64,000 nucleotides of DNA, taken from sequence record OP617745.1; one strand, given 5' to 3'. The notes below the pieces were generated by a model, which searched no databases, had not been told where the DNA came from, and was given only the letters and a program-made list of their open reading frames with translations. Within the stretch, counting starts at the first letter, position 1. Each line of letters opens with the position of its first letter. The translations under genes were made by a program, and so were the position numbers. Below are positions 1-64,000 of the stretch, in pieces.

Positions 1-2
1 TG

Positions 3-200
3 TTGATTAATAAAGAAGAACACCCAGAAATATATTTGTACGACTATTATGATAAATGCGTATATTCATACGATTCAGTACTGAAACAATTCACTGAAGT
101 ATTTTTTGTTCCTACCCCTCATGGAAACTGGACTGGAATAGGATCAAGAAATGCAGAACCAAAACATTTAGAACATTTTAAAACATTTTTCAAGGATTAA
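3..200 (+). CDS. Hypothetical protein, probably 5'-truncated at the window edge
   Basis: ORF from the track; stop is 2 nt before the thyA start. Confidence 0.6.
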   Translation: MINKEEHPEIYLYDYYDKCVYSYDSVLKQFTEVFFVPTPHGNWTGIGSRNAEPKHLEHFKTFFKD

Positions 201-202
201 AA

Positions 203-1756
203 ATGAAACAACTATTAGACTTATATGATAAAATCTTGAAAGAAGGAGTACAAAGTACAGACCGAACAGGTGTAGGTACTATTAAACTCATAGGTCAACA
301 AATGCGTTTTGATTTGAGTAAAGGGTTTCCAGCAGTAACTACCAAAAGGTTAGCATGGAAAGCAATGGTATCTGAATTACTATGGTTTATTGAAGGTTCC
401 CATGACGAGCGTCGTTTGTGTGAAATTCTTCATGGTACTCGTGATTCGGAAAAGAAAACTATTTGGAGCGATAACTGTTTAGATCGTGCGAAAAATGATC
501 CGAACAGATTTAATGGTGAAATTGTTGGTAATATGTATGGTATGAATTGGCGTTATCAACCATCTGAACCACATAGTTATCAATTCATTAAGAGAAAATC
601 TTATATTGATGATTATGTTGAAAAACATGTTTGTCCAGAAATTACTAGTGAATTTAATGGCATTAAAATACACCAGTCGGCTACATGTGGTGAATATGAA
701 GTTGTTGGAAAGCAAAACAATAATATAGTTATACGTTTTTTAGATACCGGATCTTATAAAATAGTAAAAAGAACTTCAAGAAGTATTAAAGATTTTTTTA
801 AACCATCAATAGAAGGGGTCGGATATTTAGGTGGTGTAATTCCTGATACATTAACTGCGAGAAAATTATATCAAATTTGGAAAGATATGATTATAAGAGT
901 ATATAATCCTAGAAAAAATCATGTATCATATAAAGACGTAACTGTTTGTAAACGTTGGCATAATTTTATGAATTTTTATAATGATTCCTTTTCATTATGG
1001 GGATTCCAAGAATTTGTTGATAGTGGTTATTCGCATCAACTTGATAAAGATTATTATGGTTCAAACATTTATTCACCTGATACTTGTATTTTCATATCAT
1101 CATCATTGAATAAAACATTAAATGGTGGTGGTTATGGATTTAAAATCTATATTTACAAAGATAATATATTTTATTCAATAACCGATTTACAAAAATATCG
1201 TGGATTATCAAGAAAAGCACAACTTCCAAAAGAGTTAACTATATTAGAAGATAATGAAACTCATGTAGTAAGGCCAAAAATATATATTGATCAACTTCAA
1301 CGTTGTATTGATTTAATAAAAAATGACCCAGATTCTAGAAGAATTGTTATTACATCATGGAATTCTAGAGATATTGAAAATGCAGCATTGGGTATGTGTC
1401 ACCCATTAGTTCAATGGTTTGTTATTAATGGTAAATTATCATGCATATTCTATATGCGTAGCACAGATAGCTTTCTTGGTTTGCCTTTTAATATTGCATC
1501 ATATGCACTACTTACCCATATGATAGCACAAATTACTGGATTAGAAGTAGGTGAATTAATTTATAATGGTGGTGATTGTCACATTTATTTGAATCATATT
1601 GAGCAAGTGAAAGAACAATTACAACGAGAACCAATGGAATTACCAAAATTATGGTTAGATCCCACTATAACCGATATTGAATCGTTCACAATGGGTTCAT
1701 TTAAACTATTGGATTATAATCCAATGCCAACTATTAAAGCACCAATGGCAGTATAA
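203..1756 (+). CDS. thyA: Thymidylate synthase with in-frame HNH endonuclease insertion
   Basis: TS motifs DRTGVGT, FPAVTTK, ELLWFI, YGxNWR, IDQL, DSRR, catalytic MCH, YMRSTDSFLGLPFNIASY, GDCHIY and C-terminal MAV; 517 aa against ~270-290 for a typical TS. Confidence 0.95.
   Translation: MKQLLDLYDKILKEGVQSTDRTGVGTIKLIGQQMRFDLSKGFPAVTTKRLAWKAMVSELLWFIEGSHDERRLCEILHGTRDSEKKTIWSDNCLDRAKNDPNRFNGEIVGNMYGMNWRYQPSEPHSYQFIKRKSYIDDYVEKHVCPEITSEFNGIKIHQSATCGEYEVVGKQNNNIVIRFLDTGSYKIVKRTSRSIKDFFKPSIEGVGYLGGVIPDTLTARKLYQIWKDMIIRVYNPRKNHVSYKDVTVCKRWHNFMNFYNDSFSLWGFQEFVDSGYSHQLDKDYYGSNIYSPDTCIFISSSLNKTLNGGGYGFKIYIYKDNIFYSITDLQKYRGLSRKAQLPKELTILEDNETHVVRPKIYIDQLQRCIDLIKNDPDSRRIVITSWNSRDIENAALGMCHPLVQWFVINGKLSCIFYMRSTDSFLGLPFNIASYALLTHMIAQITGLEVGELIYNGGDCHIYLNHIEQVKEQLQREPMELPKLWLDPTITDIESFTMGSFKLLDYNPMPTIKAPMAV
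563..1285 (+). mobile_element. HNH homing-endonuclease domain inserted in-frame in thyA (approximate borders)
   Basis: PSIEGVGYLG, WKDMIIRVY, VTVCKRWHNFMNFY and QLDKDYYGSNIYSPDTCIFIS..LN are typical phage HNH motifs; they lie between TS motifs YGMNWR and IDQL. Confidence 0.8.
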
Positions 1757-1757
1757 T

Positions 1758-1788
1758 AAAAAAGGGAGACATTAAGTCTCCTTTTTTT
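1758..1788. terminator. Bidirectional intrinsic terminator
   Basis: A-tract, GGAGAC-attaa-GTCTCC, T7, between convergent genes. Confidence 0.85.
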
Positions 1789-4998: not shown

Positions 4999-5035
4999 CC
5001 AGTACTATACTCTTTTGGTTAGTATATAAAGCACA

Positions 5036-10762: not shown

Positions 10763-13072
10763 ATGAATCTACAAAAACTATTTAAAGTAAGCGATGATCT
10801 GGCAACTTCTCTTGGTCATACATATCTTACTATTGACCATATTAGTGCTACACTTCTTGAAGTTGATAGTATTGTAGAACTATTCAATACCATGAATATT
10901 GATACAAATAAACTTCACAGTCGTGTGATGAATTTTCTGAAAAGTACTGAATATCCAAATCAACCGGCTAGTATGTCAGCTAATGGGACTAACAGTAGTT
11001 CTTTGTTGGTAAATCGCGTATTCAATGAACTGTCAAAAAAATCAGTTATTGAACAACTTAAACGTGATGATTTTACAATTGATTCATACTTTGTACTATT
11101 TGAATGCTTGTCTTTCCCTAATACAGCACTAGAAGCTGCGTTAAAAGAAGAAGGCGTGTCTCGCACTGAAGCAGCACGTGCATTACAAAAACATGTGGCG
11201 AAAATCGATAGTTCCATCAATCTACAAAGTATTGCTGAAGATCCTAATTCATCAGATAAGAAAGCGACGGCGGGACAAATGAATGCAATTAAACAAAAAA
11301 CTCTAGAAGATTTTACTGTAAACCTGACTAAACTTGCACAGGAAGGTAAACTTGACCCAATGATCGGTCGCCAAAAAGAACTTCAATCACTAATTGAAGT
11401 AATGGCACGTAAAAACAAAAAGAATGCTATTCTTACTGGTGATGCAGGAGTCGGTAAAACTCAGATCGTCGATGGTTTTGCACAAGCCATTGCTGATGGT
11501 GACGTACCTGACTATCTGAAAGGTGTTGAGGTATTATCTCTTAACGTTTCTGCTGTAACTGCTGGTACAAAATACCGTGGTGAATTCGAAGAACGTATGG
11601 AAGGTATTATTAAAGAACTTAAAAAACGAGAAAATGTAATTTTGTTCATTGATGAAGTACATATTATGATGGGTGCTGGTGGTAGCAGTACTGGATCTAT
11701 GGATATGAGCAATATCATGAAACCAGCACTTTCACGTGGTGATATTCGTGTTATCGGTGCAACAACTTATGAGGAATATCGCCAGAACATTGAAAAAGAT
11801 GCTGCATTTTCCCGCCGATTCACCAAAATTGATGTAGTTGAACCTAGTATTAACGAAACACGTGAAATTATTAATGGACTGAAAGGTACTTATGAAAAAT
11901 ATCACAACGTAACATTCAGTACTGAAACAATTAACTCAATTATTAATCTGAGTTCTAAATTTTTACAAAATAAAAAGTTTCCAGATAAAGCAATTGATCT
12001 GATGGATAGTGCTGCTGCTAAAATTCGTTCAGAAAAACGTTCAGATCTAAAAGTGACGGTACGTGATATTGAAGAAGTTGTGTCCAGAATCACAAACCTT
12101 GATATTAGTGTTATTTCTTGTACTGAAAGTGAACGCATGAATAATCTACCAGATGTTCTACGTTCGCGTGTATTTGGTCAAGATGAAGCAATTGAAAAAT
12201 TGGTCGATAACGTTATGGTTGCACGTGCTGGGCTACGTGATAAATCAAGTGTTCAGGGTGCTTTCATGTTTGTTGGACCATCTGGTACAGGTAAAACTGA
12301 AATCACAAAAGCACTTGCTGAAGCAATGGGTTCTGAGCTAATTCGTTTTGATATGTCAGAGTTTTCACAAGATCACACTGTATCTAAACTTATTGGTTCA
12401 CCTCCTGGATATGTAGGTCATGAAACAGGTAATGGTCAGCTTCTTGATAAAGTTGAACAATTCCCTAATGCAGTACTTCTACTGGATGAAATTGAAAAAG
12501 CACATCCAAAGGTACTACTGACATTCCTACAAGTATTGGATGAAGGGCGTTTGACTGGTTCACAAGGTAAAACAGTTTACTTTAATAATATTACGGTTAT
12601 TATGACTACAAACCTTGGAGCAGCAGATTCCAATAAACGTAGTATCGGTGTAAGTACAGTGGATTCTGCACAAGAAAAAGCTATTAAAGCATTTTTACCA
12701 CCAGAATTCATCAATCGCATTGATAGTATTGTTAAATTCAATGAACTATCATCAGAAGCAATTGATAGTGTAATTGACAAGTTTATGGGGGCATTGCGTG
12801 AACATGTTAAAGAACGTGGAATTGAAGTGGTACTGACCAAGCGTGCACGTGAATACCTAGCAGAGAATGGTGTTCAGAACGGCATGGGTGCTCGTCCAAT
12901 GAAGCGTTTGATTGAGCAATGCATTCGTGTACCTTTGGCAAAAGAAATGCTTCTAGGCTCTCTGGTGAACGGTGGTAAGGTAACGTTTGATGTGATTGAT
13001 GGTAAGATTGCAATTAAACAAAAAGTTAAAAAAGCCACAAAGGAAATTGATTCAGCAGAATTAGAGGCATAA
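10763..13072 (+). CDS. clpA: ClpA-like Hsp100/Clp AAA+ ATPase
   Basis: Two AAA modules: Walker A GDAGVGKT and GPSGTGKT, Walker B LFIDEVH and LLLDEIEKAH, pore loops KYRGEFE and GYVG; no ClpB middle domain; IGV loop. Confidence 0.9.
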   Translation: MNLQKLFKVSDDLATSLGHTYLTIDHISATLLEVDSIVELFNTMNIDTNKLHSRVMNFLKSTEYPNQPASMSANGTNSSSLLVNRVFNELSKKSVIEQLKRDDFTIDSYFVLFECLSFPNTALEAALKEEGVSRTEAARALQKHVAKIDSSINLQSIAEDPNSSDKKATAGQMNAIKQKTLEDFTVNLTKLAQEGKLDPMIGRQKELQSLIEVMARKNKKNAILTGDAGVGKTQIVDGFAQAIADGDVPDYLKGVEVLSLNVSAVTAGTKYRGEFEERMEGIIKELKKRENVILFIDEVHIMMGAGGSSTGSMDMSNIMKPALSRGDIRVIGATTYEEYRQNIEKDAAFSRRFTKIDVVEPSINETREIINGLKGTYEKYHNVTFSTETINSIINLSSKFLQNKKFPDKAIDLMDSAAAKIRSEKRSDLKVTVRDIEEVVSRITNLDISVISCTESERMNNLPDVLRSRVFGQDEAIEKLVDNVMVARAGLRDKSSVQGAFMFVGPSGTGKTEITKALAEAMGSELIRFDMSEFSQDHTVSKLIGSPPGYVGHETGNGQLLDKVEQFPNAVLLLDEIEKAHPKVLLTFLQVLDEGRLTGSQGKTVYFNNITVIMTTNLGAADSNKRSIGVSTVDSAQEKAIKAFLPPEFINRIDSIVKFNELSSEAIDSVIDKFMGALREHVKERGIEVVLTKRAREYLAENGVQNGMGARPMKRLIEQCIRVPLAKEMLLGSLVNGGKVTFDVIDGKIAIKQKVKKATKEIDSAELEA

Positions 13073-16100: not shown

Positions 16101-19100
16101 TTGTGCTGTTTTGACGCCCAATAGCATTCCAGAATACAGTATTACGTGATGATGTTTTCACATACATTGTCCATCCATCTGAATCAGTGATTCGAATAAC
16201 ATCACCAACTTGATAGTTTTTGGTATTAGCTATATCCAGGCTGGCTTCCTGAGTATAATCAGTATTTTCATCATACCCATCACTATACCAGTCAGCATAT
16301 TCCCAGTACTGGGTCATGTCAAGAGAAGTACCAAGTGATTCAACATAATCACTCTGTTTAATCATACTATGTTGTCCTTCACCTAGACCTTCCAGTGTGA
16401 TTGTTGATGGATTAGCATCAGTACTCTTTGTAGTCATGAATCTTATATAACCATTACTATCGTAGTGGACGAAATATACTGAAGTTGTATCTAGCGGGGA
16501 TGGTAATACACCAGTACTACTCAAAATTACTGCATCGTTTTCATCGAATTTATCAAAATCAGTTGAGACAACAAATTCGTTATTGTATGCCAGAACCCTG
16601 AATGTAACTGAATTTTCATTCACCTCAGTAGTTTTAACCTTGAAAACTTCACTCATTAATACCGTATCAGTTATGATATTTTGTGTTTTGTAATAATTAT
16701 TTGCACTATCTACAAACGTTCTGCGAGCTTCAATCAAATCCATAAACCAGGTTTTAGATGAACCCAACCCTAATTCTACACCAGGATAAACAATTTCATT
16801 TACTACACCACTCTTCGTGGTTTCGTGTCCTTTCAGAGAATTCCACAGAGAATTCCATATATCTGAATTGAAATTGTAGCTATCTCCTTCTTTACATAGC
16901 TGATATTGTTCATGTTTAATAATATCAACACTATCTTCATGATAAGAAACTGTCAAAATGCTGGTATCATCAGTAATTTCATATTGCATATTACTAAGAA
17001 TGAATGAATTCTCGTTAATTGGTGCAAACCAAGGAACGTCCAGTAAATGTGGATCTTTAATAATACGTGCAATATCAGTACATGATTTACTTCTGGTGTT
17101 AATTGGTGGTACATAAATTGTATCTCTTACCCAGAAATAATAATACGTAACATATGAATCAGTTGTTTCATCATACTCAATGAATGAAGTATAATTATCC
17201 ATGATTGCAGTACCAGAAGGTATATACATAGTGTTATTTTTATTATTTTTAGTTTGTTCCTGACAGTATTTGTCCCAATTATATGGCTGTACTGGAGATT
17301 TAACCCACTCAAGAACATTAATATCACTATGTGGTAGCAATCTACCCCAGTTATAACGACGATATTCATTTGTAGCATCTTCATCAATGTCACCATTCTC
17401 ATCCAGTACTGGGCGAGTGTAATCCAAATAAAATGCAGTACTGGTGTCCCACCATACTTGACCAACTTTCTCAGAACCCCATGCTTGAAGAGTTTCTCCA
17501 TTGCTATTGTACTGAGCAGGGTCTACTGGAGAGATATAAGATACATCTTTCATTGCAGTCCCAGGTAAAACACCATTAATTGGGTCAAATATATTAAGAT
17601 ATAATTCAGTAATGTTTGTTTTTGAATTATAAGTAGATGGTCTATCAAATAAAGTACTATCTGGAACATCAAAACTGTATTTTTTATCAATATATGCCTG
17701 GCGTTCGGTTGTATCACTGAATCTGGATGTATATTTGTACAGTTTTGGTCTTGTATCTGGATCAGTGAAATTAATTGTGATACTTGTATCAAACGGAACA
17801 ACAATTTTAGTTTTATCATCACCTGCCGTGAAATATTGACTTTCTACTGTTAATGCATCTGGCATAAAATATGTATCATCAACAAAATAATAATAATCAC
17901 CATCATCTAATGGAGCTTCGGCATCTAATTGAACAGTACAGTACTGTTCAGCATAAGTATCAGTATTTTCAATTGGAGTAATTGATAACATAGATACACC
18001 AGTATCAACTAAATCAAAAATGTTCCATTCCTGATTCATATCAACGAACATCCACACTGAATCTGGATTTTCACCATTATTTTTAATATAATTCATGCGG
18101 TCTTCATATGAATCCTGATAAGTCCATGTAGTATAAGATACTTCATTTAAATTAACTGGGCCAATATCAGGTAAATGGATATTACCACTCTTCCCTGAAC
18201 GCATCGGGAAGCGGAATTTACCTTTAGGACGAGTAATCCATCTGGAATCTTCACCTTGTGAACCATAATAAACTATTTCAGTACTACTTGTACTTGTATT
18301 AACATCTTTATCAAACGTAACCAGTTGTGGTTCTTGTTTAAAATCACTGTTAATTAATTGAAATTGTAAATTTTTCTTGGCATTAACGTTTCCATAAGTA
18401 CCAACTTTAAAAGCCCACTCTTGTAGTGCTTTATATTCATCAGTATTATATGATTTAGATACACGAAGAACGCGTTCCATTACCAAATTAGAGCCTTTAT
18501 CTCTAATAAAACCACGATAAAAATCAACACGGTTGGGATTATTAGTGATCATTTGCTGTAAGTAATCACGAGTTTGATATCCAATAACATGAGTACTTAG
18601 ATCATACAGTTGAACATCAGAAACAGGATCATTTGAATCATAATAATGTTGGAAATTAGTAACTAATGTTTCAAATGATGGTAATGTACCAGCTTCAAGA
18701 ATTATAAATCCGGGTGCTTGTAGGCGACCAACCCAGTTATCAGTGATATAACCGTACATTTTCACCAATTCCTGAATAGAACCGAATGTAGGTTGATAAA
18801 TGCTATCACCAAAAATAGTTTTATCATCAAATACCACTGCATGTTCCCATGAACATACACCTAAACGAACCAACGCCATGCGTTTATCGGCATCTTCATT
18901 AACTCTAACAGTGAAAACATTACCAATTCTTGATGTTTCAACTTCATATGGGTAGATACCACTGTTATCATCGTCCAACAGACTCCAGACACCACCATTT
19001 GTTTCACTAATACTTTGTACTGAGCCAAAATAAGTTCCGAATTTGGCATTTTTAGAGCTTGGTGTACATGAAATGTAATCACCAATGGTTAAATCTGTGG

Positions 19101-38762: not shown

Positions 38763-40907
38763 GTGTTAACATTTAAACGTATTACTATGCGAAATTTTTT
38801 CTCCTTTGGTAATGCACCACAAACAATTGATCTAGATAGTCCAGATATTACACTTGTTCTTGGTCAAAATAATGATGCAGTTATTGAAGGAAATGATAGT
38901 TCAGGAAGAAGAAATGGTGTTGGTAAATCCGCTATTATTCAGGGAATTGTTTTTGGTTTGTACGGAAAAAGTATTGCAAATGAAATTAAAATTCCCAATT
39001 TAGTGAATAAAATAAACGGAAAGAACTGTGAAGTAAAAATTGAATTTGAAAAAGATGGAATTTCTTATATTGTAGAACGTGGGCGTAATCCTGCGTTTTT
39101 TAATTTCATTAAACTCAGTGATGATCAAATAAATGACGAAAGTCGTGGTGAAAAGAAAGATACACAAGAAGATTTAAATGAAATTTTGGGTATTTCACAA
39201 TTTCTGTTTGAACACATTGTAGTACTGAATGCTAATGTCGAACCTTTTCTTTCTATGTCTGTACAAAAACAACGTGATATGATCGAAGAACTTCTCGGTA
39301 TTACGCAATTAACCGAAAAAGCACAACTTCTTAAAGATATGCAGAAGGAAACTAAGCGTTTAGCAGAGCAAGAACGTTTTAAAAATGAAACTATACAAGC
39401 AAGTAATGAACGAATTCAAAAAAGTATAGAAACTCTTCAGGAACAGGCAAATAAATTCGAAATTGACAAGTCAAACCGAATCAGTGAACTAGAAAAACAG
39501 ATTGAAACCTATTCTGTTCTAAATTTCGAAGAACTATATGAACAAGCCAATATAAAAGAAGAATCATTAATTCATAATGCTAAGAAATCCAATTTAGAAA
39601 ATCGCGTATCTGATTTAGTACTTAAATATGAATCGTATAAACGAGATATTGAACATAATAAAGCAATACTAAAGATTAATATCGAACGCCTTCAACAAGT
39701 TGACATTGTAAGTGAATTAAAGAATCATGAAGAACTTGAATTGTGGAAACAACTTGAATCTATACTAAAAGAGAACATAACACAAAAGAATTATAAAGAA
39801 CAAAAAATAAATTTATTAAAAAGTACGTTACAAAGTTCTAAATCTTCTCTTGAATTGGAAAAAAACAAACTAGATGTGGTACTGAATAGCAAATGCCCAC
39901 TGTGTAAATCAAGTCTAGAGCATAATGAGCATAGTTCTGATATTAAATCAAAAATTCTGAAAACGATTACTGATATTGAGAACTCTATATTAAGTACTGA
40001 ATATGATATTAGTATACTTTATGAAGAAGTTGATTCAATTGACGTGTTTGATATGCCCCCTAAGCCTGAAACTGTGTATAATACACTGACTGAAGCACAA
40101 ATGCATGAGCATAAGTTACAGGAGTTAATTAAACAGTACGAAATTGATCAAATCAATATTTTTGAATCAGAATTAATGTCATCATATGAAGAATTAAATT
40201 CTTTTGAACTAAAAGATGTACCAGATGCACTAACCAAGACTGAAGTTCGTGAACTGGAACTTGCTTATGATTCATTAAAACAACAATTACAACGAGAATT
40301 TAGTACAGTAAACACATATATTAGTCAAATTAACACACTTCAGAATGAATCCATTGTTGTGGTTAATTATGACTCTTATAATGAACTGGATAAGCTACAA
40401 AATCATCAAGATTTTATGGTTAAACTTCTTCTCAATAAAGATTCATACTTGAGAAAGCGTATCATCGAACAAAATATTTCATTTTTAAACAACAGACTTC
40501 AGTACTATATTGATATGTGTGGTTCAGAGCACAATGTTAAGTTCTTGACTGATTTGAGTGTTGAAATTGAAAAGAATGACCAGTACTTTGACTATAAACA
40601 ACTTAGTCGTGGTGAACGTACTCGTGTTAATATCGCACTGTCTTGTGCCTTCAGGGATACATATGAATCATTATATCAAAATATCAATTTAATTTGTTGT
40701 GATGAGGCATTGGAAACTGGCTTGGATGCTAGTGGTGTATTGAGAGCATGGATGATATTTCAGGACATGGCATCAATCAGAAATAAAAATGTCTTTGTTA
40801 TTTCACACAGAGATGAACTTATTTCAAAAACCGAAAATATCATGAAAGTTACTAAAGAGGATGGATTTAGTACTGTTCAGTACTGTACATTAGACGATAT
40901 ATATTAA
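38763..40907 (+). CDS. Recombination ATPase subunit (T4 gp46/Rad50/SbcC-like)
   Basis: GTG start; Walker A RNGVGKS, coiled coils, CPLC zinc hook, LSRGE signature, Walker B CCDE, ISH. Confidence 0.92.
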   Translation: MLTFKRITMRNFFSFGNAPQTIDLDSPDITLVLGQNNDAVIEGNDSSGRRNGVGKSAIIQGIVFGLYGKSIANEIKIPNLVNKINGKNCEVKIEFEKDGISYIVERGRNPAFFNFIKLSDDQINDESRGEKKDTQEDLNEILGISQFLFEHIVVLNANVEPFLSMSVQKQRDMIEELLGITQLTEKAQLLKDMQKETKRLAEQERFKNETIQASNERIQKSIETLQEQANKFEIDKSNRISELEKQIETYSVLNFEELYEQANIKEESLIHNAKKSNLENRVSDLVLKYESYKRDIEHNKAILKINIERLQQVDIVSELKNHEELELWKQLESILKENITQKNYKEQKINLLKSTLQSSKSSLELEKNKLDVVLNSKCPLCKSSLEHNEHSSDIKSKILKTITDIENSILSTEYDISILYEEVDSIDVFDMPPKPETVYNTLTEAQMHEHKLQELIKQYEIDQINIFESELMSSYEELNSFELKDVPDALTKTEVRELELAYDSLKQQLQREFSTVNTYISQINTLQNESIVVVNYDSYNELDKLQNHQDFMVKLLLNKDSYLRKRIIEQNISFLNNRLQYYIDMCGSEHNVKFLTDLSVEIEKNDQYFDYKQLSRGERTRVNIALSCAFRDTYESLYQNINLICCDEALETGLDASGVLRAWMIFQDMASIRNKNVFVISHRDELISKTENIMKVTKEDGFSTVQYCTLDDIY

Positions 40908-40936
40908 AAAAAGGGGAGCATTAGCTCCCCTTTTTT
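40906..40936. terminator. Bidirectional intrinsic terminator
   Basis: A-tract, GGGGAGC-atta-GCTCCCC, T6; overlaps the last codons of the 40921 ORF. Confidence 0.85.
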
Positions 40937-41952
40937 ATTATTGTCATAATTTCATTCAAAGATGTAGGTGATACGGTTTCGGTCCACCCATCACCGAATA
41001 ATTCTTTTGTTAAGTGTCTTGCTTTTATGGTTCTTTTTATTTCTTTTTCTATGTTAAATGCATCATTACAATTTTCATATACTTTGTGGTATACAACATT
41101 CAATTTGTACTTACATTTATTTTTATATGAACCCATTCTGTGTTTGATATTCTTTGTTATACCGAATTTATAACCAACTATATTATTATAATCATCAGAT
41201 ACTTCTAAAATGTATATACCTGAACTAAAATCAGAAGATTTATAACCATTTTTGTAACTAACAGAATTACACAAAGGACACCCTTTATCTCGCATAAAAT
41301 TGTCATATGTCATAGACCATGTATAATTGCATTTACAAGTTAAAATGACTTTACTAAAAACACCATTAAAGTTCTTTTCATCTATTAATTCAAATTTAAT
41401 GCCAGTTTCTTTGCTTTTAATTTTTAAATTCTCATTTAATTCATTTATACTGTATTTGTGAGTACCTGAACATTTCAAACAACCAATATTATTACTGAAA
41501 AATGAGTCATAAGTGGTAGTATTCCATTCGTATGCTTCAGAATGTTTAGTATTGTCATTGCATTTTAGTTTTAAATATGTTTTTGTTTTATTATATTCAT
41601 CAAAACCGAGGAATTCCAGTGTCCCACCTCGTTTAATGCATTCATTTTCCACATTTTGAATTAAAATTTCAGGTGTTAACTTATTCAATGAAGGCTTTCT
41701 GAACTTTTTTGATTCTATATTTCTCAGATATCTATATAATTTGTTAATTCTGTAATTATTATAAGTTATATTATCATGTGTTATTGAAGTAAGTGTATTA
41801 TTACCTAACCATTTTTCTTCAATAATGAATCCATTGAATTTTATATTAAATTTGGATAACCTTTTCGATAAATCGTTGAAATATTCCAATGGAGTTCTGG
41901 AATTATAGTTAATGTGAACTAAAATAATATCATCTGGTAAAGATATTATCAT
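40921..41952 (-). CDS. Putative homing endonuclease with C-terminal GIY-YIG-like domain
   Basis: CxxC repeats; GIYILEV...YKFGITKNIKHR...E..IK...FGDGWTET. Confidence 0.7.
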   Translation of the reverse strand: MIISLPDDIILVHINYNSRTPLEYFNDLSKRLSKFNIKFNGFIIEEKWLGNNTLTSITHDNITYNNYRINKLYRYLRNIESKKFRKPSLNKLTPEILIQNVENECIKRGGTLEFLGFDEYNKTKTYLKLKCNDNTKHSEAYEWNTTTYDSFFSNNIGCLKCSGTHKYSINELNENLKIKSKETGIKFELIDEKNFNGVFSKVILTCKCNYTWSMTYDNFMRDKGCPLCNSVSYKNGYKSSDFSSGIYILEVSDDYNNIVGYKFGITKNIKHRMGSYKNKCKYKLNVVYHKVYENCNDAFNIEKEIKRTIKARHLTKELFGDGWTETVSPTSLNEIMTIIKKGS

Positions 41953-42568: not shown

Positions 42569-42607
42569 AAAATAGGTCAGTACTGAAAAGTACTGACCTA
42601 TTTTTTT
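42569..42607. terminator. Perfect 16-bp hairpin with GAAA loop and T tract
   Basis: AAAATAGGTCAGTACT-gaaa-AGTACTGACCTATTTT. Confidence 0.8.
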
Positions 42608-51953: not shown

Positions 51954-53210
51954 TTGTTGAACAAAGTAACAAGGATGTTTTATATGATGACATTTGATGA
52001 AGTGCATGAACAATTTATTAAAATTGGTAATAAGAGAGAACCATCTTATTTTAAAAAAATAATTTTAAAAGAAATTGAAATGTATAATTTAAATTATGAA
52101 TTTATTGGGTTTAATATTAATTCTATTATTGAATTTAAAGGAGCAAGAACGAAGTTAGTACTAAAATGTCCAGTACATGGTATTTTTTCTGATTGTACTT
52201 TCAATAATTTTACAAAATCTAATGCACAGGGTCGCCGCTGTCCCGAATGTTCTAAAGAATCTAAATCTTTGAAACAACGTTGTTGTACTGAAGAATTTAT
52301 TGAAAAATGTAAAAGAGTACATAATGATTTTTATGATTACAGTAAGACTATATACGGAAAAAATGCTCATGAACACGTTGTTGTTACCTGTAAATTACCA
52401 AATCATGGAGATTTCAAAATACGTCCTTCATGTCATTATAATAAAGCACAAGGTTGTCCTATATGTGCAAAAGAAAAAAGAAAAATTGATGAACAGGATA
52501 TAATAACCAGATTAAATGAAATACATAATAATCACTTTGGATTTGATAAATTCGTATATAATGGATCGGAAAATAAATCTATAGTAACTTGTTTAGTGCA
52601 TAATAAAAATTATGAAGTTAAAGTTGGGAGTTTACTTTATGATCATGGCTGTGCATTGTGTTCAACAAGAGCAAAACACACAAAAGAATCATTCATATCG
52701 ATGGCAGTACTGAAACATGGTAATGTATATGATTACAGTAAAGTACAATATGTAGATTTATTCACTAAAGTTGAAGTTGTTTGTAATAAAGATAATCATG
52801 GTTCATTCTTTATTACTCCAACAAGTCATATACATGGTTTAAAACCAAATGCATGTCCAAAATGTTCAAAATATGGATTTCAACCAAATAAACCTGGATT
52901 CTTTTATATTCAAAAAATAACTAATTCATGTAAAGAAGTTATATCTTATAAGTACGGTATTACATGTGATTTAATAAGACGATTGAATGAGCATAACAGA
53001 AATTCTATATATGTGCATGAATATATTTTTCATGAATACTTTGATAATGGGTATGAAGCAATTGAACTTGAAAAGCTTATAAAAAAATCAATTCCTTCTT
53101 GGTATTTGAATTCTAATGAATTTGGTGATGGTTTCACTGAAACATACGATCCTAAATACCACAAAGATGTTATTAATATAATCAAAAAACAACAAAGGAG
53201 AAATCCATGA
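51954..53210 (+). CDS. Putative homing endonuclease: CPxHG..GCPxC repeats plus GIY-YIG-like domain
   Basis: Four Cys/His repeat units; GFFYIQ...YKYGITCDLIRRL...E..IK...FGDGFTET; likely start is ATG 51984 (AAGGA RBS). Confidence 0.72.
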   Translation: MLNKVTRMFYMMTFDEVHEQFIKIGNKREPSYFKKIILKEIEMYNLNYEFIGFNINSIIEFKGARTKLVLKCPVHGIFSDCTFNNFTKSNAQGRRCPECSKESKSLKQRCCTEEFIEKCKRVHNDFYDYSKTIYGKNAHEHVVVTCKLPNHGDFKIRPSCHYNKAQGCPICAKEKRKIDEQDIITRLNEIHNNHFGFDKFVYNGSENKSIVTCLVHNKNYEVKVGSLLYDHGCALCSTRAKHTKESFISMAVLKHGNVYDYSKVQYVDLFTKVEVVCNKDNHGSFFITPTSHIHGLKPNACPKCSKYGFQPNKPGFFYIQKITNSCKEVISYKYGITCDLIRRLNEHNRNSIYVHEYIFHEYFDNGYEAIELEKLIKKSIPSWYLNSNEFGDGFTETYDPKYHKDVINIIKKQQRRNP

Positions 53211-56292: not shown

Positions 56293-56586
56293 ATGGCTAA
56301 ACATGAAGACAAAGTACAAATTGAAGATCTAAATAATGAACAACGCAAACGTCTTAGTGACGGTCTGAACAATGCAGTAGTTCAACTTACTTTTATTGAT
56401 GATACCAAAGCCTCACTGAAAGATTTTATTGATTCACTGGCTGACGAACTCGGTATCGATGCGAGTGATATCAAACAAGCCGCTAATACTATCTATAAAC
56501 AAAACTTCTTCGATAAATCCAGTAAGCATGATAAAATCGAAACTATTCTAAGTATTACTGGTAATCTTCCACAAGCCGACGATTAA
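56293..56586 (+). CDS. Putative dsDNA-binding protein (T4 DsbA-like)
   Basis: 97 aa; LKDFIDSLADELGID..IKQAANTIYKQNF resembles T4 DsbA IKDI..RAKDELGVD..FNRLLALYHK. Confidence 0.55.
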   Translation: MAKHEDKVQIEDLNNEQRKRLSDGLNNAVVQLTFIDDTKASLKDFIDSLADELGIDASDIKQAANTIYKQNFFDKSSKHDKIETILSITGNLPQADD

Positions 56587-56661: not shown

Positions 56662-59190
56662 ATGTATATTGATGCATATATGGAACGAAAACGTAGTGGT
56701 GATGTGTTGCACGTAGTAGAACGAAAAAATGGAAAGCGTATTCTACGAGAATTACAACCACTATATGAGTATTATGTAGAAAATGTTAATGGTAATCACA
56801 AAACCATTTATGGTACTAAAGCAGAAAAACTGGAATTCGATACTGCATCTGAACTAAAACGAAGTATAGAAAAAAATGTAGCAAATGGAATCAGAACATT
56901 TGAAGGTAAATTCAATGTTGTATTCAAAACACTTGCTCAATATTATATGGGTACTGAATCACCAGATTTAAACATTGTATTCTTCGATATAGAAACTGAT
57001 TTTCATAAGAAATTTGGTTATGCATCTCCATCTAATCCCTTTAATCGTGTAACAGCCATTTCATTATATCAGTCATGGACAGGTAAAGATTATGTACTTA
57101 CCCTTGCTCCAGAAGATATGACAACAACAGAAGCACAGGATATTGTCAATAAACTAAATACGGAAACTAATGATCCAAATTCAAGTGTAATTCTTTATAC
57201 TGATGAAAAGGAAATGTTCATGGATTTCTTTAGTCTAATTGATGATAGTGATGTATTATCTGGATGGAATAGTGAATTTTTTGATATTCCTTACATGATT
57301 AACAGAACCAAAATTATCTTCAATGAAGCCATGACTGCTCGTTGGTGTTTATGGAATAAAAAACCAATTGCACGTGAAGCGGATAACTTTGGTAAATTGG
57401 TACAGACATATGATTTGGTTGGTCGAGTTCATCTTGATTATCTTGCTCTTTATAAGAAACACGCCGCTCAGGTAGAGCAATCGTATAAACTTGATTATAT
57501 CGCAGAAAAAATCACAAAAGAAAATAAAGTACAGTACGAAGGATCTCTGGATAAATTATATAGAGAAGATTATATGACTTTCCTTCGATATTCTAAACAG
57601 GATAGTATTCTTCTCAAAAAAATCGATTCTATTCTTGACTATATTAGTCTGCATAACCGACTGGCACATAAAGAATGTGTTCTCATCAAAACTACTATGG
57701 GTTCAGTAGCACTGATTGACACTTCAATTATCAATCTAGCACACAAACGTGGTGAAGTGGTATTTGATAAAAAAGAAGAGGTTGAAATTGATCCAGAACT
57801 TGAGTACTATGATGGATACGATGATGATGAAGACAATAATGATTCAAAACTCAGTGCAAAAGCAGCAGGTGCATGGGTACAAGACCCAATATTAGGATTA
57901 GTTGAATACTTGGGTTGTACTGACTTTAACTCACTTTACCCAACTGTACTTCGAACTCTAGGAATGAGTACTGAATGTATTCTTGGGCAAATTAGACAAG
58001 ATTATACAGAAAAATACTTAGAAGAACGTATATCTGAACAAAAAGCAAAGTCTAAATCAAAATCATTTGAACCGGAGTGGACAGCAGCATGGCATGGTTT
58101 ATTCGCCGCTGTGGAGTTTACGATGGTACATGAAAGAAGTGAAAAACTACTGACTATTGATTTAGAAGATGGCAGTTCTTTCCAGGCAACTGGTTCACAG
58201 TTATATGATATTATATTCAGTCCAGAAAGTACTATTGTACTTAGTGCAAATGGAACACTATTTGATAAATCAAAATATGGTGTTATTCCAGATATCCTAA
58301 CGCAATGGTATTCTGAGCGTAAAGCCCAGCAAAAAATGGTAATTGATTATAAACATATGGCTTCAGATGGTTGGGAAATTCCATCACCTGATATTGTTCA
58401 AAATATGTTTTCACAATTCAGTACTAAATCATACTATAAAACAAACCTTCATGAAGAAGATCCAGTATATCTTCTACGTAAAGCTATAGGTGATAATAAT
58501 CTTGAAGAAATTGCTCGTCTTATTGTAGAAAATAATTTAGTACTAAAAGATGGACGTATTTTTTGTTCAGATGAGGATAAAAAATATTTCAAACAACAAA
58601 GTGCCTTCTGGAAACAAAACCAGCAAATTCGTAAAATTCTTCTAAACAGTCTTTATGGTGCACTATTGAACAAAGGAAGTACTTTCTTTGATAAACGACT
58701 TGGACAATCAGTAACACTAACTGGTCGCTCAATGACAAAACACATGGCAAGTCGCATTAATGAAATTACTACTGGAGTGTATAATCACACTGGTGGTAGT
58801 GTTATATATGGTGATTCTGTAACTGGTGATTCTGTAATTGATGTAATCATTGATGGAAAACCACAGTCTATTCCCGTTGAAGAACTTTATGAAATGTTTA
58901 TTAGTACTGAATATAATGATAAGGGTGATAAAGATTATGTTAAACTTGAATTGTTGGTAAAAACATTTAGTAAATCAGATAATTGTGTTTATTATGATTC
59001 TGCAAAAACTATTATGCGTCATAAAAACAAAAATGATTTATATGAAATAAGTACTGAATACAATAAAATCAAAACTACATCAGACCATAGTATCATTGCT
59101 GAAGTTGATGGTGAAATTGGTGAATATACTCCATTGGAAATTGAAGAATTAATTGAAAATGATTGTGATGTATATATGATAATATCGTAA
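56662..59190 (+). CDS. DNA polymerase B (gp43-like), N-terminal part fused to split-intein N fragment
   Basis: ExoI FFDIETD, ExoII WNSEFFDIPY, region II DFNSLYP, region III KILLNSLYG, then YGD followed by intein start SVTGDS. Confidence 0.93.
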   Translation: MYIDAYMERKRSGDVLHVVERKNGKRILRELQPLYEYYVENVNGNHKTIYGTKAEKLEFDTASELKRSIEKNVANGIRTFEGKFNVVFKTLAQYYMGTESPDLNIVFFDIETDFHKKFGYASPSNPFNRVTAISLYQSWTGKDYVLTLAPEDMTTTEAQDIVNKLNTETNDPNSSVILYTDEKEMFMDFFSLIDDSDVLSGWNSEFFDIPYMINRTKIIFNEAMTARWCLWNKKPIAREADNFGKLVQTYDLVGRVHLDYLALYKKHAAQVEQSYKLDYIAEKITKENKVQYEGSLDKLYREDYMTFLRYSKQDSILLKKIDSILDYISLHNRLAHKECVLIKTTMGSVALIDTSIINLAHKRGEVVFDKKEEVEIDPELEYYDGYDDDEDNNDSKLSAKAAGAWVQDPILGLVEYLGCTDFNSLYPTVLRTLGMSTECILGQIRQDYTEKYLEERISEQKAKSKSKSFEPEWTAAWHGLFAAVEFTMVHERSEKLLTIDLEDGSSFQATGSQLYDIIFSPESTIVLSANGTLFDKSKYGVIPDILTQWYSERKAQQKMVIDYKHMASDGWEIPSPDIVQNMFSQFSTKSYYKTNLHEEDPVYLLRKAIGDNNLEEIARLIVENNLVLKDGRIFCSDEDKKYFKQQSAFWKQNQQIRKILLNSLYGALLNKGSTFFDKRLGQSVTLTGRSMTKHMASRINEITTGVYNHTGGSVIYGDSVTGDSVIDVIIDGKPQSIPVEELYEMFISTEYNDKGDKDYVKLELLVKTFSKSDNCVYYDSAKTIMRHKNKNDLYEISTEYNKIKTTSDHSIIAEVDGEIGEYTPLEIEELIENDCDVYMIIS
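58816..59190 (+). mobile_element. Split intein N fragment (124 aa)
   Basis: Block A SVTGDSVI directly after YGD; block B TTSDHS (TxxH); acidic tail, then stop. Confidence 0.88.
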
Positions 59191-59216
59191 AAATGTGATA
59201 TGGTGATGGATTAACA

Positions 59217-60230
59217 ATGGAATGTATCACCATACATAAAAGGATTATTAATATGGCTAAAAAAATCAATACATTTGATGAGTATTTGGAAAGTTTTAAG
59301 AAGTCATCAAAACTGAATAGAAATATTTTATCTGAATTAGAAATAGAACAACTTAAAGAACTTTATAACAAATTTAATATTGAAAAAGTTACATATCTTG
59401 GAAAATCACCAATAAGATATGCATATAATTTTATAAATTATAATGTCAATAGTAGTACTTGGATTTCTGACATTAAACGCATAATTGAACTTGGGAATAA
59501 AGCAAATAAAGAAAAAATGATTCTTATGTATGGAAGTGAACATGGTAATGAAAAATGGAATAATTATTTAAAAGTACAATCTGAATCAAATACATTTGAA
59601 TATAAAAATAAAAAATTTGGAATGACCAAAGAAGAATTTAAAGAATATAATTCCAGAAGATCTGTAACTCTTAAAAATCTTATAAAACGACATGGTGAAG
59701 AAATTGGTTTAGAAAAGTGGAATGAATATTGTGACAGACAACGATATACTACGTCACTTGATTATTTCATTGAAACATATGGTGAAATTAAAGGAACTGA
59801 AAAGTATGAATCGTATATTGAAGTTGTATCTAAAAATATAAAATACTGTTTCAAAAATAAAATTGTGTCAAATTTGGAAAATGAAGTACGTAATGAAATT
59901 GAAAAATATTTCAGTACTGAATCGCAATATATAATTGAAACTGATATGAAATGCTATTCATCTGCTTTTGATATCTATATACCATCAAAAGAACTTTTGA
60001 TAGAAGTACATGGTGATTATTGGCATATGAATCCAAAAACCCATAATCCTTCTTATATCAATCCTACAACAAAAATGTCAGCAAAACAAAAATGGCATTT
60101 GGATAAAGTTAAAGTTGGTTTTGCAAATAAAAATGGTTATGATGTTATTGTTATATGGGAATCAGATTGGAAGACTGACAAAGATAATATTATGGAGAAT
60201 ATTATAAAATATGAAAAAACAAGAAACTAA
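59217..60230 (+). CDS. Free-standing Vsr-like/PD-(D/E)xK homing endonuclease between the split-intein halves
   Basis: Three (Y/H)GxExGxEKW/Y repeats; FDIYIPSKELLIEVHGDYWH and GYDVIVIWESDW; start may be ATG 59253. Confidence 0.8.
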   Translation: MECITIHKRIINMAKKINTFDEYLESFKKSSKLNRNILSELEIEQLKELYNKFNIEKVTYLGKSPIRYAYNFINYNVNSSTWISDIKRIIELGNKANKEKMILMYGSEHGNEKWNNYLKVQSESNTFEYKNKKFGMTKEEFKEYNSRRSVTLKNLIKRHGEEIGLEKWNEYCDRQRYTTSLDYFIETYGEIKGTEKYESYIEVVSKNIKYCFKNKIVSNLENEVRNEIEKYFSTESQYIIETDMKCYSSAFDIYIPSKELLIEVHGDYWHMNPKTHNPSYINPTTKMSAKQKWHLDKVKVGFANKNGYDVIVIWESDWKTDKDNIMENIIKYEKTRN

Positions 60231-60576
60231 TATTATAAGTAATGAAGATTATCGTAAAGTTCAATCTATGGTTATGAATCAGTATAATAAATCAAACTTA
60301 CATCCTGATGTTCATTTGGAAAATAATCAATACAGAATTGATGGAATTTCGCATCTTAGTCAAGATGTTTTACTAAGATTGAAAACAAAAGTGTGTGTAG
60401 ATTTATTAAAAGAAATAATCAGTACTGAATGGAATTTAGATAAATCAAAAACTACGTATAAAAAAGAAAAAATTGTTAGTGTAAAAAATATTGGTAGTAC
60501 TGATGATTATGTATATGACATTAGTATGGGTGGTATTAATCATTATTTCTTTGCTAATAATATTTTAGTACATAAT
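60211..60576 (+). mobile_element. Split intein C fragment (122 aa, ends His-Asn)
   Basis: KIVSVKNIG..DYVYDISM..NHYFFANNILVHN|T. Confidence 0.88.
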
Positions 60577-61425
60577 ACCGATTCTGTGTACTTCAGCGTT
60601 GTTCATTATTTAAAAGAACAAAACATTCCATGTGATCTAAGTAAAGAAGAGATTGTGGATATGTATATAAAAATTGGTGATGAAGTGGGTGAGTCTTTTC
60701 CTGAATTTATGGACAAAATGTTCAATACTGGAATCGAAAAAGGTAAAATTGTAGGTGCTGATCTGGAAATGGTTGGCTCCCGAGGTCTGTTCCTTAAAAA
60801 GAAACGTTATGCTATACTGAAATATTGGGAAGATGGGTTCCGTAAAGATGTTGATGGTAAACCTGGTGAAATCAAAGCAATGGGGCTTGAGATTAAGCGT
60901 TCAGATACACCAAAATACATCCAGAACTTCCTTGAAGAGACTTTAATGGCATTACTGGTAGGGGAGTCCGAGAGTGAATTAAAACAGCGTGTACGTGATT
61001 TTAAGGCGGTATTTAAGGACAAACCAGCACACGAAAAGGGTTCGCCTAGAACAGTGAAAAATTATTCAAACCTTGAAGCTGATTTTAAAAATACTGGTAA
61101 ATGTCATGTAGGTCACGTCCTCGCTGGTATTCAATGGAATATGTTACGCAATGCATATGATGATAAAACTGTGCCAGAAGTTACTGATGGTACTAAAGTG
61201 ATTGTATGTGATTTGAAACCAAATCCACTTGGAATTACTAAAATTGGTTATCCAATTGATTGTGCTGAGTACTTACCTGAGTGGTTTCTTGAATTACCGT
61301 TCGATACAGATAAAATGGAAGAAATTATCTTAACTAAAAAACTGGATAATATCTTTGGTATTCTTGATATGGATATTGGTATTCATGAAAAAAGTACTGC
61401 ACAGGATTTTGGATTTTTCTCGTAA
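60211..61425 (+). CDS. Split-intein C fragment fused to DNA polymerase B C-terminal part
   Basis: Block F VYDISM and block G FFANNILVHN, then extein TDSVYF; PolB motifs KKRYA and KAMGLEIKRSDTP. Confidence 0.93.
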   Translation: MKKQETNIISNEDYRKVQSMVMNQYNKSNLHPDVHLENNQYRIDGISHLSQDVLLRLKTKVCVDLLKEIISTEWNLDKSKTTYKKEKIVSVKNIGSTDDYVYDISMGGINHYFFANNILVHNTDSVYFSVVHYLKEQNIPCDLSKEEIVDMYIKIGDEVGESFPEFMDKMFNTGIEKGKIVGADLEMVGSRGLFLKKKRYAILKYWEDGFRKDVDGKPGEIKAMGLEIKRSDTPKYIQNFLEETLMALLVGESESELKQRVRDFKAVFKDKPAHEKGSPRTVKNYSNLEADFKNTGKCHVGHVLAGIQWNMLRNAYDDKTVPEVTDGTKVIVCDLKPNPLGITKIGYPIDCAEYLPEWFLELPFDTDKMEEIILTKKLDNIFGILDMDIGIHEKSTAQDFGFFS

Positions 61426-62715: not shown

Positions 62716-62922
62716 ATGCCAATTTATACTTATCGTTGTAGTACCGAAAATTGTACTAATGTAGAAGATAAAATTGTTAAATATTCAGAACGTGAAAATC
62801 CAAAAGACTGTAAAGTGTGTGGTTCTGAAAAATCAATGCATTTTGAAAATTTCACACCGGGTGACAAAGGTGCAGCTTTTAACTACAAAGGAAATTGGTT
62901 GAATACCACAGGGAGATATTAA
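62716..62922 (+). CDS. FmdB-family zinc-ribbon protein
   Basis: MPIYTYRC....C...CKVCGS. Confidence 0.8.
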   Translation: MPIYTYRCSTENCTNVEDKIVKYSERENPKDCKVCGSEKSMHFENFTPGDKGAAFNYKGNWLNTTGRY

Positions 62923-62923
62923 T

Positions 62924-63223
62924 ATGAAATTAAAAATGATTAATGATTATGTACTGGTAAAACTTATTAAAGCAGAGGATACTAGTGCTGGTGGTATTAT
63001 TCTAAGCAATGTTGAACCGCCTTGCGTCGGTCTTGTATTGTCAGTAGGTAAGGGTAAAGTTCTACCTAATGGCGAAATTGCTGAACATGATATTAAAGAA
63101 GGTGATATGGTTATTTTTGGTAAATCATCCCTTAATATACCAATTGAAGAAGATCTTGGTGGTGGAAAGGATACTTATCATGTAATGAAAATTGAAGAAG
63201 TGTTTGGTAAGAAATATGCATAA
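62924..63223 (+). CDS. groES: Co-chaperonin GroES
   Basis: INDYVLVK, mobile loop TSAGGIIL, VLSVGKG, IKEGDMVIF. Confidence 0.9.
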   Translation: MKLKMINDYVLVKLIKAEDTSAGGIILSNVEPPCVGLVLSVGKGKVLPNGEIAEHDIKEGDMVIFGKSSLNIPIEEDLGGGKDTYHVMKIEEVFGKKYA

Positions 63224-63923
63224 GAAAAAACGTCTCTTTCCATTTTGGTTAATTCCAGCCCATTGGGGATTAACTGGAAAAGCAAAAGAACTCGCTAAAA
63301 TCAATTATTATTATTCAGGAAAAGATGCTGATCTTATGAGTGCAGAACATATGTACTTAACTCCATATGAAATTGATAAAGCCAAAATGGAAATCAACAA
63401 AAAATATGATGATATTAGTGAACTACTATATCGTATCGGTGTTGTTGATTTGGATTTAAAATACAATCGAATTTCTAAACTGGAGCACAGTAATTTAGTA
63501 CTGGACATTCGATATGAATTAAAAGAACTGGATGAAAAAGAGTACGAAGCTCAAAAAATCGAATTACTTCCTGATGGTGTGGAAAAGAAATTAGCTGCAA
63601 TTGAATATTCATATAAGTATCATGAGATTACTGAAAATGAATATCATAAAGAAATCGCAACTATTAACAAAGAACCATGGGGTCAATTATATTCATCATA
63701 TAATCCAGAAGAAGGATCAATTGAATTTTCTTTTGATTATAATGAATATTTTTGGAAAAAACTAAAAGCTGATGGTCATCCGGGTAATGACGAAGATGAG
63801 ATTATCGATAATTATATCAGATATTGTTGTCGAAACATTGCACAGGATGATAATGAAGTTTCTGAAAGTGATGATGTGGTAATTCCAGACATTCTTCCAG
63901 AAGGATTTAAATCTTACAAATAA
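63216..63923 (+). CDS. Hypothetical protein
   Basis: Track ORF 63192; likely start is ATG 63216, overlapping the groES stop. Confidence 0.6.
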   Translation: MHKKKRLFPFWLIPAHWGLTGKAKELAKINYYYSGKDADLMSAEHMYLTPYEIDKAKMEINKKYDDISELLYRIGVVDLDLKYNRISKLEHSNLVLDIRYELKELDEKEYEAQKIELLPDGVEKKLAAIEYSYKYHEITENEYHKEIATINKEPWGQLYSSYNPEEGSIEFSFDYNEYFWKKLKADGHPGNDEDEIIDNYIRYCCRNIAQDDNEVSESDDVVIPDILPEGFKSYK

Positions 63924-63924
63924 T

Positions 63925-63958
63925 AAAAAAGGAGAATCATTTTGATTCTCCTTTTTTT
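63925..63958. terminator. Intrinsic terminator
   Basis: A6, GGAGAATC-atttt-GATTCTCC, T7. Confidence 0.85.
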
Positions 63959-64000
63959 ATATATTAAAAATTAGCTTACCAGAGCAGGGATCCATTTATA

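Follow-up and report, generated by a model that had tools for sequence, protein, structure and literature searches.

Why should a phage carry a short palindrome in great excess, when phages normally purge such sequences? The question is raised by the last 64 kb (293702-357701) of the genome of Klebsiella phage KP13-7 (OP617745.1, Alcyoneusvirus; 100% identity), in which the hexamer AGTACT is strongly over-represented. This stretch of 64,000 bp, hereafter the window, comes from a RaK2-like jumbo phage, is 99% identical to RaK2 and K64-1, and contains the genes for thymidylate synthase, a ClpA-like ATPase, baseplate and tail proteins, gp55, gp46/47, portal, capsid and DNA polymerase. A sequence-only reading had estimated about 115 copies of AGTACT against 20-25 expected; the exact count is 124 (1.94 per kb) against 21.9 expected from base composition, an excess stronger than that first stated. 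The present analysis confirms a clade-wide, DNA-level palindromic element of about 12 bp, which is also built into early promoters and terminators. The evidence points to a putative phage-specific DNA tag.

The size of the excess depends on the background model. An order-1 Markov model predicts 15.8 copies in the window, order 2 predicts 32, order 3 predicts 61 and order 4 predicts 114. The sequence-only reading had held that an order-4 model able to reproduce the count would speak against a signal. The excess does vanish at this order, but the test was badly posed: it conditions on AGTAC and GTACT, which are themselves 2-4x enriched, and absorbs the excess because these 5-mers carry the signal. 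Such a fit shows only that the flanks are independent given the GTAC core, and is no sign of an artefact. The excess is nested, with GTAC at 424 copies versus 184-296 expected, and AGTAC and GTACT at 210 and 231 versus 52-173. It is also graded, rising from GTAC to AGTACT and then to the octamer CAGTACTG, which is found 31 times against 0.6 expected; CAGTACTA and TAGTACTG together occur in 36 copies.

The location of the sites bears out the claim that they are spread over both strands, all reading frames and the spaces between genes. Annotated coding sequences (CDS), in genes of both strands, hold 117 of them (81 as AGT-ACT, encoding Ser-Thr, 24 as xxA-GTA-CTx and 12 as xAG-TAC-Txx), and the other seven fall within 3.4 kb of intergenic DNA. 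The excess persists under a shuffle of synonymous codons inside each gene, which keeps the protein, its dipeptides and the codon usage, and which yields 39.9±6.1 sites against the 117 observed (z=12.7). Keeping the dinucleotides at codon junctions as well gives 56.8±5.1 (z=11.9), and a permutation of whole codons in the window genes gives 28.6; a codon or dipeptide artefact is thus ruled out by three kinds of shuffle. Each of the three frames is 2-6x enriched relative to the shuffles, and against the synonymous-shuffle null the most over-represented hexamer of the window is AGTACT and the most over-represented octamer is CAGTACTG. In RaK2 (NC_019526.1), which was analysed over its full sequence, the CDS contain 763 sites versus 238.6±13.3 after the synonymous shuffle (z=39), every frame being 3-4x enriched. 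The proposal that the pressure acts on the DNA, rather than through codons or dipeptides, is upheld in both data sets.

The effect of this pressure can be seen in the encoded proteins. AGT and ACT are the commonest codons for Ser and Thr in the window, and 69% of the coding sites stand in the AGT-ACT frame. No dipeptide is more over-represented than Ser-Thr (159 versus 112), for which AGT-ACT is used in 81 of the 159 cases (51%), where codon usage predicts 28. In orthologues from phage 121Q (Asteriusvirus), a different dipeptide is found at 40 of 59 in-frame window sites, and Ser-Thr is conserved at 32% of the in-frame sites versus a dipeptide baseline of 47.8% (p=0.019). Of 31 conserved Ser-Thr dipeptides, 16 are encoded as AGT-ACT in both genomes, near the product of each lineage's own preference. 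The sites thus fall at poorly conserved protein positions, and it is more plausible that the motif has produced the Ser-Thr excess than the reverse: the pressure overrides the protein sequence and distorts it. The tRNA cluster of RaK2 (L006:26487-32119) includes tRNA-Ser(GCU), the reader of AGT, a codon inflated by the motif, together with Ser(UGA), Thr(UGU), Arg, Asn, Leu, Gly and Met; ARAGORN detects eight tRNAs in this cluster, and fewer are annotated in the record.

The shape of the motif is more extended than the hexamer. The flanks of the window sites mirror each other: 48% have C at -1 and 49% have G at +1, and further out T is favoured at -2 and -3 on one side and A at +2 and +3 on the other. 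CAGTAC and GTACTG are both enriched on the sense strand of the window CDS, so that the symmetry is real and no effect of mixed gene orientations. Perfect palindromy of the surrounding bases is in excess out to three flanking pairs (41 versus 12 in coding DNA) and falls to expectation beyond them, which sets the unit at about 12 bp, TTCAGTACTGAA. The half-sites are independent of one another, AGTACT being counted 124 times where its 5-mers predict 114, and CAGTACTG 31 times versus 29.5; in RaK2, one-mismatch neighbours that retain one half-site are 1.3-1.6x enriched. The motif behaves as two additive half-sites and not as an all-or-none hexamer, a shape that would be that of a dimer operator. 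A hairpin or cruciform role for the dispersed sites was rejected, as palindromy ends at 12 bp and few sites lie in real hairpins. Both the 12-bp extension and the placement in early promoters, described below, are additions to what had been observed from the sequence alone.

Over the whole RaK2 genome AGTACT occurs 937 times (2.7 per kb), versus 117 expected from composition and 79 under an order-1 model, together with 2,520 copies of GTAC and 247 of CAGTACTG. Its density is higher in intergenic DNA (4.8 per kb) than in coding DNA (2.5 per kb). All 10-kb bins are enriched, with a peak of 7.55 per kb at 224-244 kb, an early/terminal-repeat-like region. Outside this region the sites are Poisson-like (coefficient of variation 0.98), and neither helical phasing or regular spacing outside promoters nor a preference for gene ends was detected in RaK2. 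Sites are sparsest in the tail-fibre/depolymerase cluster, which contains the largest gaps (1.57 per kb, and 0.9 per kb over ORF527-528). This cluster is taken to have been horizontally exchanged, and its poverty in sites would fit a slow accumulation of sites in resident DNA.

The excess is a property of one clade of phages. AGTACT is the top hexamer in 50 kb of 121Q (89 versus 13.8 expected), in 41 kb of Salmonella phage Munch (61 versus 11.8), in 50 kb of GAP32 (Mimasvirus; 253 versus 13.8) and in nine loci of the clade from IMG/VR. The related Vibrio phage 2.275.O (capsid 72% identical) has 5 copies versus 9.2 expected, a 31-kb section (70850-102010) of Pseudomonas phage PA5oct (capsid 66% identical) has none versus 11.3, and Agrobacterium phage Atu_ph07 has 3 versus 3.8. 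T4, of similar G+C content, has 4 versus 7.9, and a 50-kb sample of E. coli K-12 has 3 versus 4.8. The enterobacterial clade stands about 8-12x above expectation, within and between genes as well as in early promoters, with about one copy per 370-520 bp, some 30-45x denser than in the E. coli sample. The trait therefore originated in the lineage of those members that infect Enterobacterales. The same lineage has lost GCGC, CTGCAG and CAGCTG completely or almost completely, and genomes with zero GCGC and zero CTGCAG thus carry an excess opposite to the usual avoidance of palindromes, a point on which the sequence-only reading is supported. Avoidance of the restriction type (ScaI/RsaI) is not found in the clade, but is seen instead in the relative PA5oct.

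Word avoidance in these genomes is extensive in its own right. In RaK2 the observed and expected counts are 0 and ~123 for GCGC, 0 and 25 for CTGCAG, 0 and 30 for GCATGC, 1 and 79 for CTTAAG, and 1 and 25 for CAGCTG, and the non-palindromic GACATC/GATGTC is also avoided (2 versus 141). GCGC is absent from every clade sample, and T4, PA5oct, the Vibrio phage and Atu_ph07 have about as many copies of it as expected.

Comparison of genomes at two evolutionary distances shows that density is conserved and position is not. Between KP13-7 and RaK2 (~1% divergence), 7 of 116 sites differ (four of them found only in RaK2), versus a baseline of 4.9% for all hexamers. Across 30 pairs of orthologues from the window and 121Q (68.6% nucleotide identity), 81 and 80 sites are present and 22 are shared; this 27% exceeds the hexamer-conservation baseline of 16-17%, and about 73% of the positions differ. 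Equal density, turned-over positions and altered dipeptides together imply a continuing pressure which makes sites at permissive positions in each lineage.

A second kind of placement is found in the early region. The 224-244 kb region of RaK2 contains small open reading frames (ORFs) with long spacers, and one of its genes has a homologue inside the terminal repeat that PhageTerm predicts for phage Muenster, from which we infer that this genome end enters the cell first. Sixteen predicted early promoters of the sigma-70 type in this region have the form AGTAC/TTGaca-N14-AGTAC/TGtATAAT, with two AGTACT copies 20 bp apart, the last T of one being also the initial T of the -35 element and that of the other the T of the extended -10 TG; an example of such a dual-site promoter is at 227479-227530. 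In a motif-blind set, picked by the -35 and -10 hexamers alone, AGTACT occupies -20..-15 in 12 of 28 early-region promoters versus none of 93 chance matches elsewhere. GAP32 promoters likewise carry two copies, in a slightly shifted register, and the 20-22 bp spacing is seen again in four early regions from other genera, including GAP32 and IMG/VR relatives. A scan of IMG/VR for the dual-site pattern returned 15 loci, all of them on clade contigs of 345-371 kb or on fragments with the same signature. The symmetric sites overlap core elements of a putatively co-regulated promoter set, as operators do.

The motif also occurs in other regulatory elements. A few sites are found at the tip of hairpins in 5' untranslated regions, and the bidirectional terminator which separates the endonuclease VII and gp26 hub genes (Table 1) has a stem formed by two AGTACT copies (42579, 42589) around a GAAA loop. 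The late (TATAAATA) and TGAAACG-type promoters of RaK2 show no association with AGTACT. The T4-type late-promoter word TATAAATA is itself avoided on the sense strand of genes, with 0 copies versus 6 in the window CDS, and TAAATA on the sense strand of the RaK2 CDS numbers 112 versus 312 under the synonymous shuffle.

We favour a phage-encoded symmetric protein over a pure mutational drive, a role in modification only and a host factor, and regard a translation-level origin as excluded. AGTACT would then be the core of a twofold-symmetric recognition sequence of about 12 bp, with the consensus T-T-C-A-G-T-A-C-T-G-A-A, held at high density in the RaK2-like jumbo phages of Enterobacterales by a persistent pressure at the DNA level. 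Its reader would be a dimeric, sequence-specific DNA-binding or DNA-modifying protein, encoded by the phage and arisen in the ancestor of the clade. The dispersed copies may serve as a positive tag for phage DNA in which density counts and position does not, densest on the early/terminal-repeat-like region. The paired copies, 20-22 bp apart over the -35 element and the spacer/extended -10, may act as operators through which the same protein controls early transcription. This explanation is held tentatively, as somewhat less than an even prospect.

Several points weigh against it. To our knowledge, no positive self-tag recognised by a protein has been characterised in a lytic phage. The ~937 ScaI-type sites would be a liability unless modified, and the early promoters are partly paralogous, so that their shared register may in part reflect common descent. 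No purifying selection on individual sites was detected among the 99%-identical genomes, a comparison of low power, and the data on dispersed sites are equally compatible with a non-adaptive molecular drive. Moreover, family searches and fold comparisons of the proteins tested gave none with a plausible specificity for AGTACT.

Among these proteins, the product of the ORF at 56293 had been called DsbA-like and suggested for a pull-down or ChIP test. It matches PHROG 639 ('transcriptional regulator') and is highly conserved, but no link to AGTACT emerged: a homologue is present in the motif-negative Vibrio phage, and its AlphaFold2 model, a helical hairpin with a predicted local distance difference test (pLDDT) score of 73, has no significant match in the PDB. 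ORF332 of RaK2 (230247-230747, 166 aa, early region) has a sub-threshold match to the N-terminal oligomerisation domain of H-NS and is conserved in the Klebsiella, E. coli and Salmonella members; in Muenster it lies in the predicted terminal repeat and is annotated as a putative DNA-binding protein. It was rejected as a reader, the H-NS match being its only one and below threshold. The phage nucleases examined are T5orf172/GIY-YIG-like proteins with zinc fingers.

A bolder form of the favoured explanation, which is doubtful as a whole, supposes a self code that replaces base hypermodification in these phages. It would consist of a dense TTCAGTACTGAA tag (~1 per 400 bp, rare in the host) combined with the near-total purging of words common in the host, and its reader, a phage protein dedicated to the task, would license or protect phage DNA and set the timing of early transcription.

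The strongest competitor, unlikely but by no means negligible, is a non-adaptive molecular drive, in which context-biased mismatch repair, gene conversion or a homing-like process, at work in highly recombinogenic phages, converts near-sites to AGTACT and nothing reads the product. Models for it exist in the very-short-patch (VSP) repair that inflates CCWGG in E. coli, where an oligomer excess is the product of biased repair and not of selection, and in proposals made for HIP1. A drive would account for the maintenance of density while positions turn over, for the lack of conservation at individual sites and for the Poisson-like distribution. It would also account for the lower number of sites in recently acquired genes, which resembles amelioration, and for the hierarchical enrichment from GTAC through AGTACT to CAGTACTG, and the clade encodes a C5-methyltransferase and many nucleases. 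However, the T:G to C:G signature of VSP-type repair, a depletion of deamination neighbours, was looked for in RaK2 and is missing, AGTATT being found 290 times versus 291 in the shuffle (1.00) and AATACT 227 versus 272 (0.83), with no clear depletion. The C of AGTACT also lies outside CpG, at which the phage C5-methyltransferase reportedly acts. Drive alone leaves unexplained the recurrence of paired sites over the -35 and extended -10 elements in two genera with diverged spacers, and we know of no drive that yields a 12-bp palindrome with independent half-sites. A separate mutational route, the double deamination of methylated GCGC to GTAC, was rejected: its intermediates AGTGCT and AGCACT are mildly enriched, yet it cannot sustain the excess because GCGC is already gone in four genera while AGTACT arises at unrelated sequences.

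A role as a modification target, such as N6-methyladenine placed at GTAC or AGTACT by the Dam-like PF05869 enzyme, would make the motif a dense epigenetic self-mark or a protection, and is an improbable special case of the protein-read tag. Both the C5-methyltransferase (RaK2 ORF194, PF00145) and the Dam-like enzyme (ORF447) are conserved in the motif-positive enterobacterial clade, and among the matches listed none is from PA5oct-type phages. Without modification, the ~937 ScaI-type and 2,520 RsaI-type sites would be a large restriction liability, and RaK2 DNA is reported to be cut only by methylation-insensitive enzymes (PMC3622015). Characterised PF05869 enzymes, on the other hand, are known to methylate GATC. 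The Dam-like gene (RaK2 L008:30980-31498) is only 69% identical between RaK2 and Muenster, both of them Alcyoneusvirus phages, although their major capsid proteins are 99.7% identical, which suggests an allele replacement, and the motif is constant across this change. Mom (RaK2 ORF149) is restricted to the Klebsiella genus Alcyoneusvirus and is rejected as reader or writer of a clade-wide motif, and an enzyme specific for the strict hexamer predicts a cooperative enrichment of full sites which is not seen. RaK2 DNA is reported to carry methylation at CpG, where the C5-methyltransferase reportedly acts (PMC3622015). The search for a cognate methyltransferase, suggested by the sequence-only reading, thus ended with no AGTACT-specific enzyme assignable among the C5, Dam-like and Mom proteins.

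It is very improbable that the motif is read by a host protein common to Enterobacterales, recruited or titrated by the phage. The enrichment does track the host order, as phages that infect Klebsiella, Escherichia, Salmonella, Cronobacter, Yersinia and Serratia have it and the relatives from Vibrio, Pseudomonas and Agrobacterium do not, and the density peaks in the early/terminal-repeat-like region, inferred to be the first DNA to enter the cell. The closest candidate is the nucleoid-occlusion factor SlmA, a TetR-type dimer whose genome-dispersed sites are 12-bp palindromes as well. SlmA is known from Vibrio as well, yet the motif is missing from the Vibrio relative, and we know of no other enterobacterial regulator that binds CAGTACTG. 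The SlmA site, GTGAGTACTCAC, is centred on AGTACT, and its half-site needs G1, T2, a purine at 3, A4, G5 and a pyrimidine at 6 (PMC3020112). The phage flanks differ where SlmA needs them, with C at position 3 in 47% of the sites, G there in only 7%, and G at position 1 in 13%; one of the 937 RaK2 sites matches the degenerate consensus and about 2% match one half-site, and SlmA was rejected as the reader.

A by-product of translation (codon usage, codon-pair bias or Ser-Thr-rich structural proteins) or of base composition is virtually excluded, for although the AGT-ACT frame predominates, its codons are the commonest for Ser and Thr, the phage has a tRNA-Ser(GCU) and an order-4 model reproduces the count, protein- and codon-preserving shuffles leave a 2-3-fold excess (z ~12-39) in all frames, the excess is larger between genes, the sense-strand flanks are palindromic, and T4 at similar G+C content shows none.

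Among known systems, the comparison with HIP1 (GCGATCGC) drawn by the sequence-only reading fits on statistical grounds. As in cyanobacteria, a short palindrome is many-fold over-represented genome-wide relative to composition and low-order Markov models, in all frames and in non-coding DNA, independently of the protein, with an abundance shared across a clade; for HIP1, whose role is not known, an involvement of DNA methyltransferases is suspected. HIP1 differs in sequence and belongs to cellular chromosomes, whereas (C)AGTACT(G) is carried by lytic enterobacterial jumbo phages and also stands in promoters and terminators. The phage motif is accordingly an analogue of HIP1 and not a member.

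The DNA uptake sequences (DUS) of Neisseria and the uptake signal sequences (USS) of Haemophilus are self tags at about one copy per kb, at permissive positions in genes and often paired as terminator stems, whose density is also kept while positions turn over; they are, however, asymmetric 9-12-mers that the competence machinery recognises and that spread through biased uptake, whereas the phage motif is palindromic and involves no uptake step. Stoperators of cluster A mycobacteriophages are asymmetric 13-14-mers, about 20-35 per genome, intergenic and oriented with transcription, in temperate phages. They share with the phage motif the presence of many copies of one site genome-wide, in their case bound by a repressor, plus a true operator at the early promoter, and differ from its ~900 palindromic, mostly intragenic sites in a lytic phage.

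Chi (GCTGGTGG), recognised by RecBCD, is another over-represented oligomer that marks own versus foreign DNA by its density, but it is asymmetric and orientation-biased. No bias of this type is found for AGTACT, the motif and its flanks being palindromic. Chi is separately enriched in these phages. In RaK2 the octamer is ~19x enriched (15 copies on the + strand and 3 on the - strand, versus 0.8 expected), with 9 of the + strand copies clustered in the early/terminal-repeat-like region (record 221857-243570), and the first 50 kb of GAP32 hold 9 and 3.

The AGTACT excess is unmentioned in the genome papers of RaK2 and CBB and in the restriction-digest passages of the fEgEco12 paper, and a full-text literature search for AGTACT or CAGTACTG in phages returned primers and unrelated uses only. 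A clade that keeps ~900 copies of a palindrome, and alters its own proteins in doing so, must have either an undescribed system of protein-DNA recognition or an undescribed mutational drive. Either outcome would be new to the biology of jumbo phages, a group under development against Klebsiella and E. coli, and a self code, if true, would be a new kind of viral self/non-self discrimination. The motif also offers a handle for finding the factor and dissecting the control of early genes, as well as a simple signature of clade members and of recently acquired genes.

Table 1. AGTACT sites and related features of the window (window positions)
Feature	Position	Strand	Remarks
Dispersed AGTACT, 124 sites, 31 as CAGTACTG	1..64000	.	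exact count; 117 in CDS (both strands), 7 intergenic
Full 12-bp palindrome TTCAGTACTGAA	74..85; identical at 11915-11926, 22493-22504, 29334-29345, 59910-59921	.	
12-bp variant ATCAGTACTGAT	24650-24661, 31746-31757, 38526-38537	.	
12-bp variant CCCAGTACTGGG	16302-16313	.	
12-bp variant TTTAGTACTAAA	58536-58547	.	
Bidirectional intrinsic-terminator hairpin, interval between endonuclease VII gene and gp26 hub gene	42569..42604	.	predicted fold -26.6 kcal/mol
Two AGTACT 10 bp apart (AGTACTGTTCAGTACT), 3' end of gp46-like gene	40869..40884	.	just upstream of terminator 40907-40936
Intergenic AGTACT between divergent genes	5001..5006	.	
Other single intergenic AGTACT	26672, 26804, 29337, 50625	.	
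97-aa ORF ('DsbA-like' in the sequence-only reading), candidate small DNA-binding regulator	56293..56586	+	conserved in clade

The DNA polymerase gene of KP13-7 (56662-61425) is annotated as three ORFs, and ~1.8 kb of it (58815-60575) is absent from RaK2; matches to intein-splicing domains flank a middle ORF which has a weak match of the restriction-endonuclease type, and this arrangement suggests an intein with a homing endonuclease. The thymidylate synthase ORF (203-1756) encodes 517 aa versus 309 aa in RaK2, its Pfam match comes in two parts, and for ~1 kb (roughly 475-1490) there is no alignment to RaK2. It probably carries an in-frame insertion, possibly an intein. An extra KP13-7 gene at 36566-37735, between gp55 and gp47 and absent from RaK2, encodes a treble-clef zinc-finger protein. 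Two paralogous zinc-finger nuclease genes are found at 40921-41952 (T5orf172/MUG113 plus a zinc finger) and at 51954-53210 (zinc finger/CapR domains only), and they look like mobile homing endonucleases.

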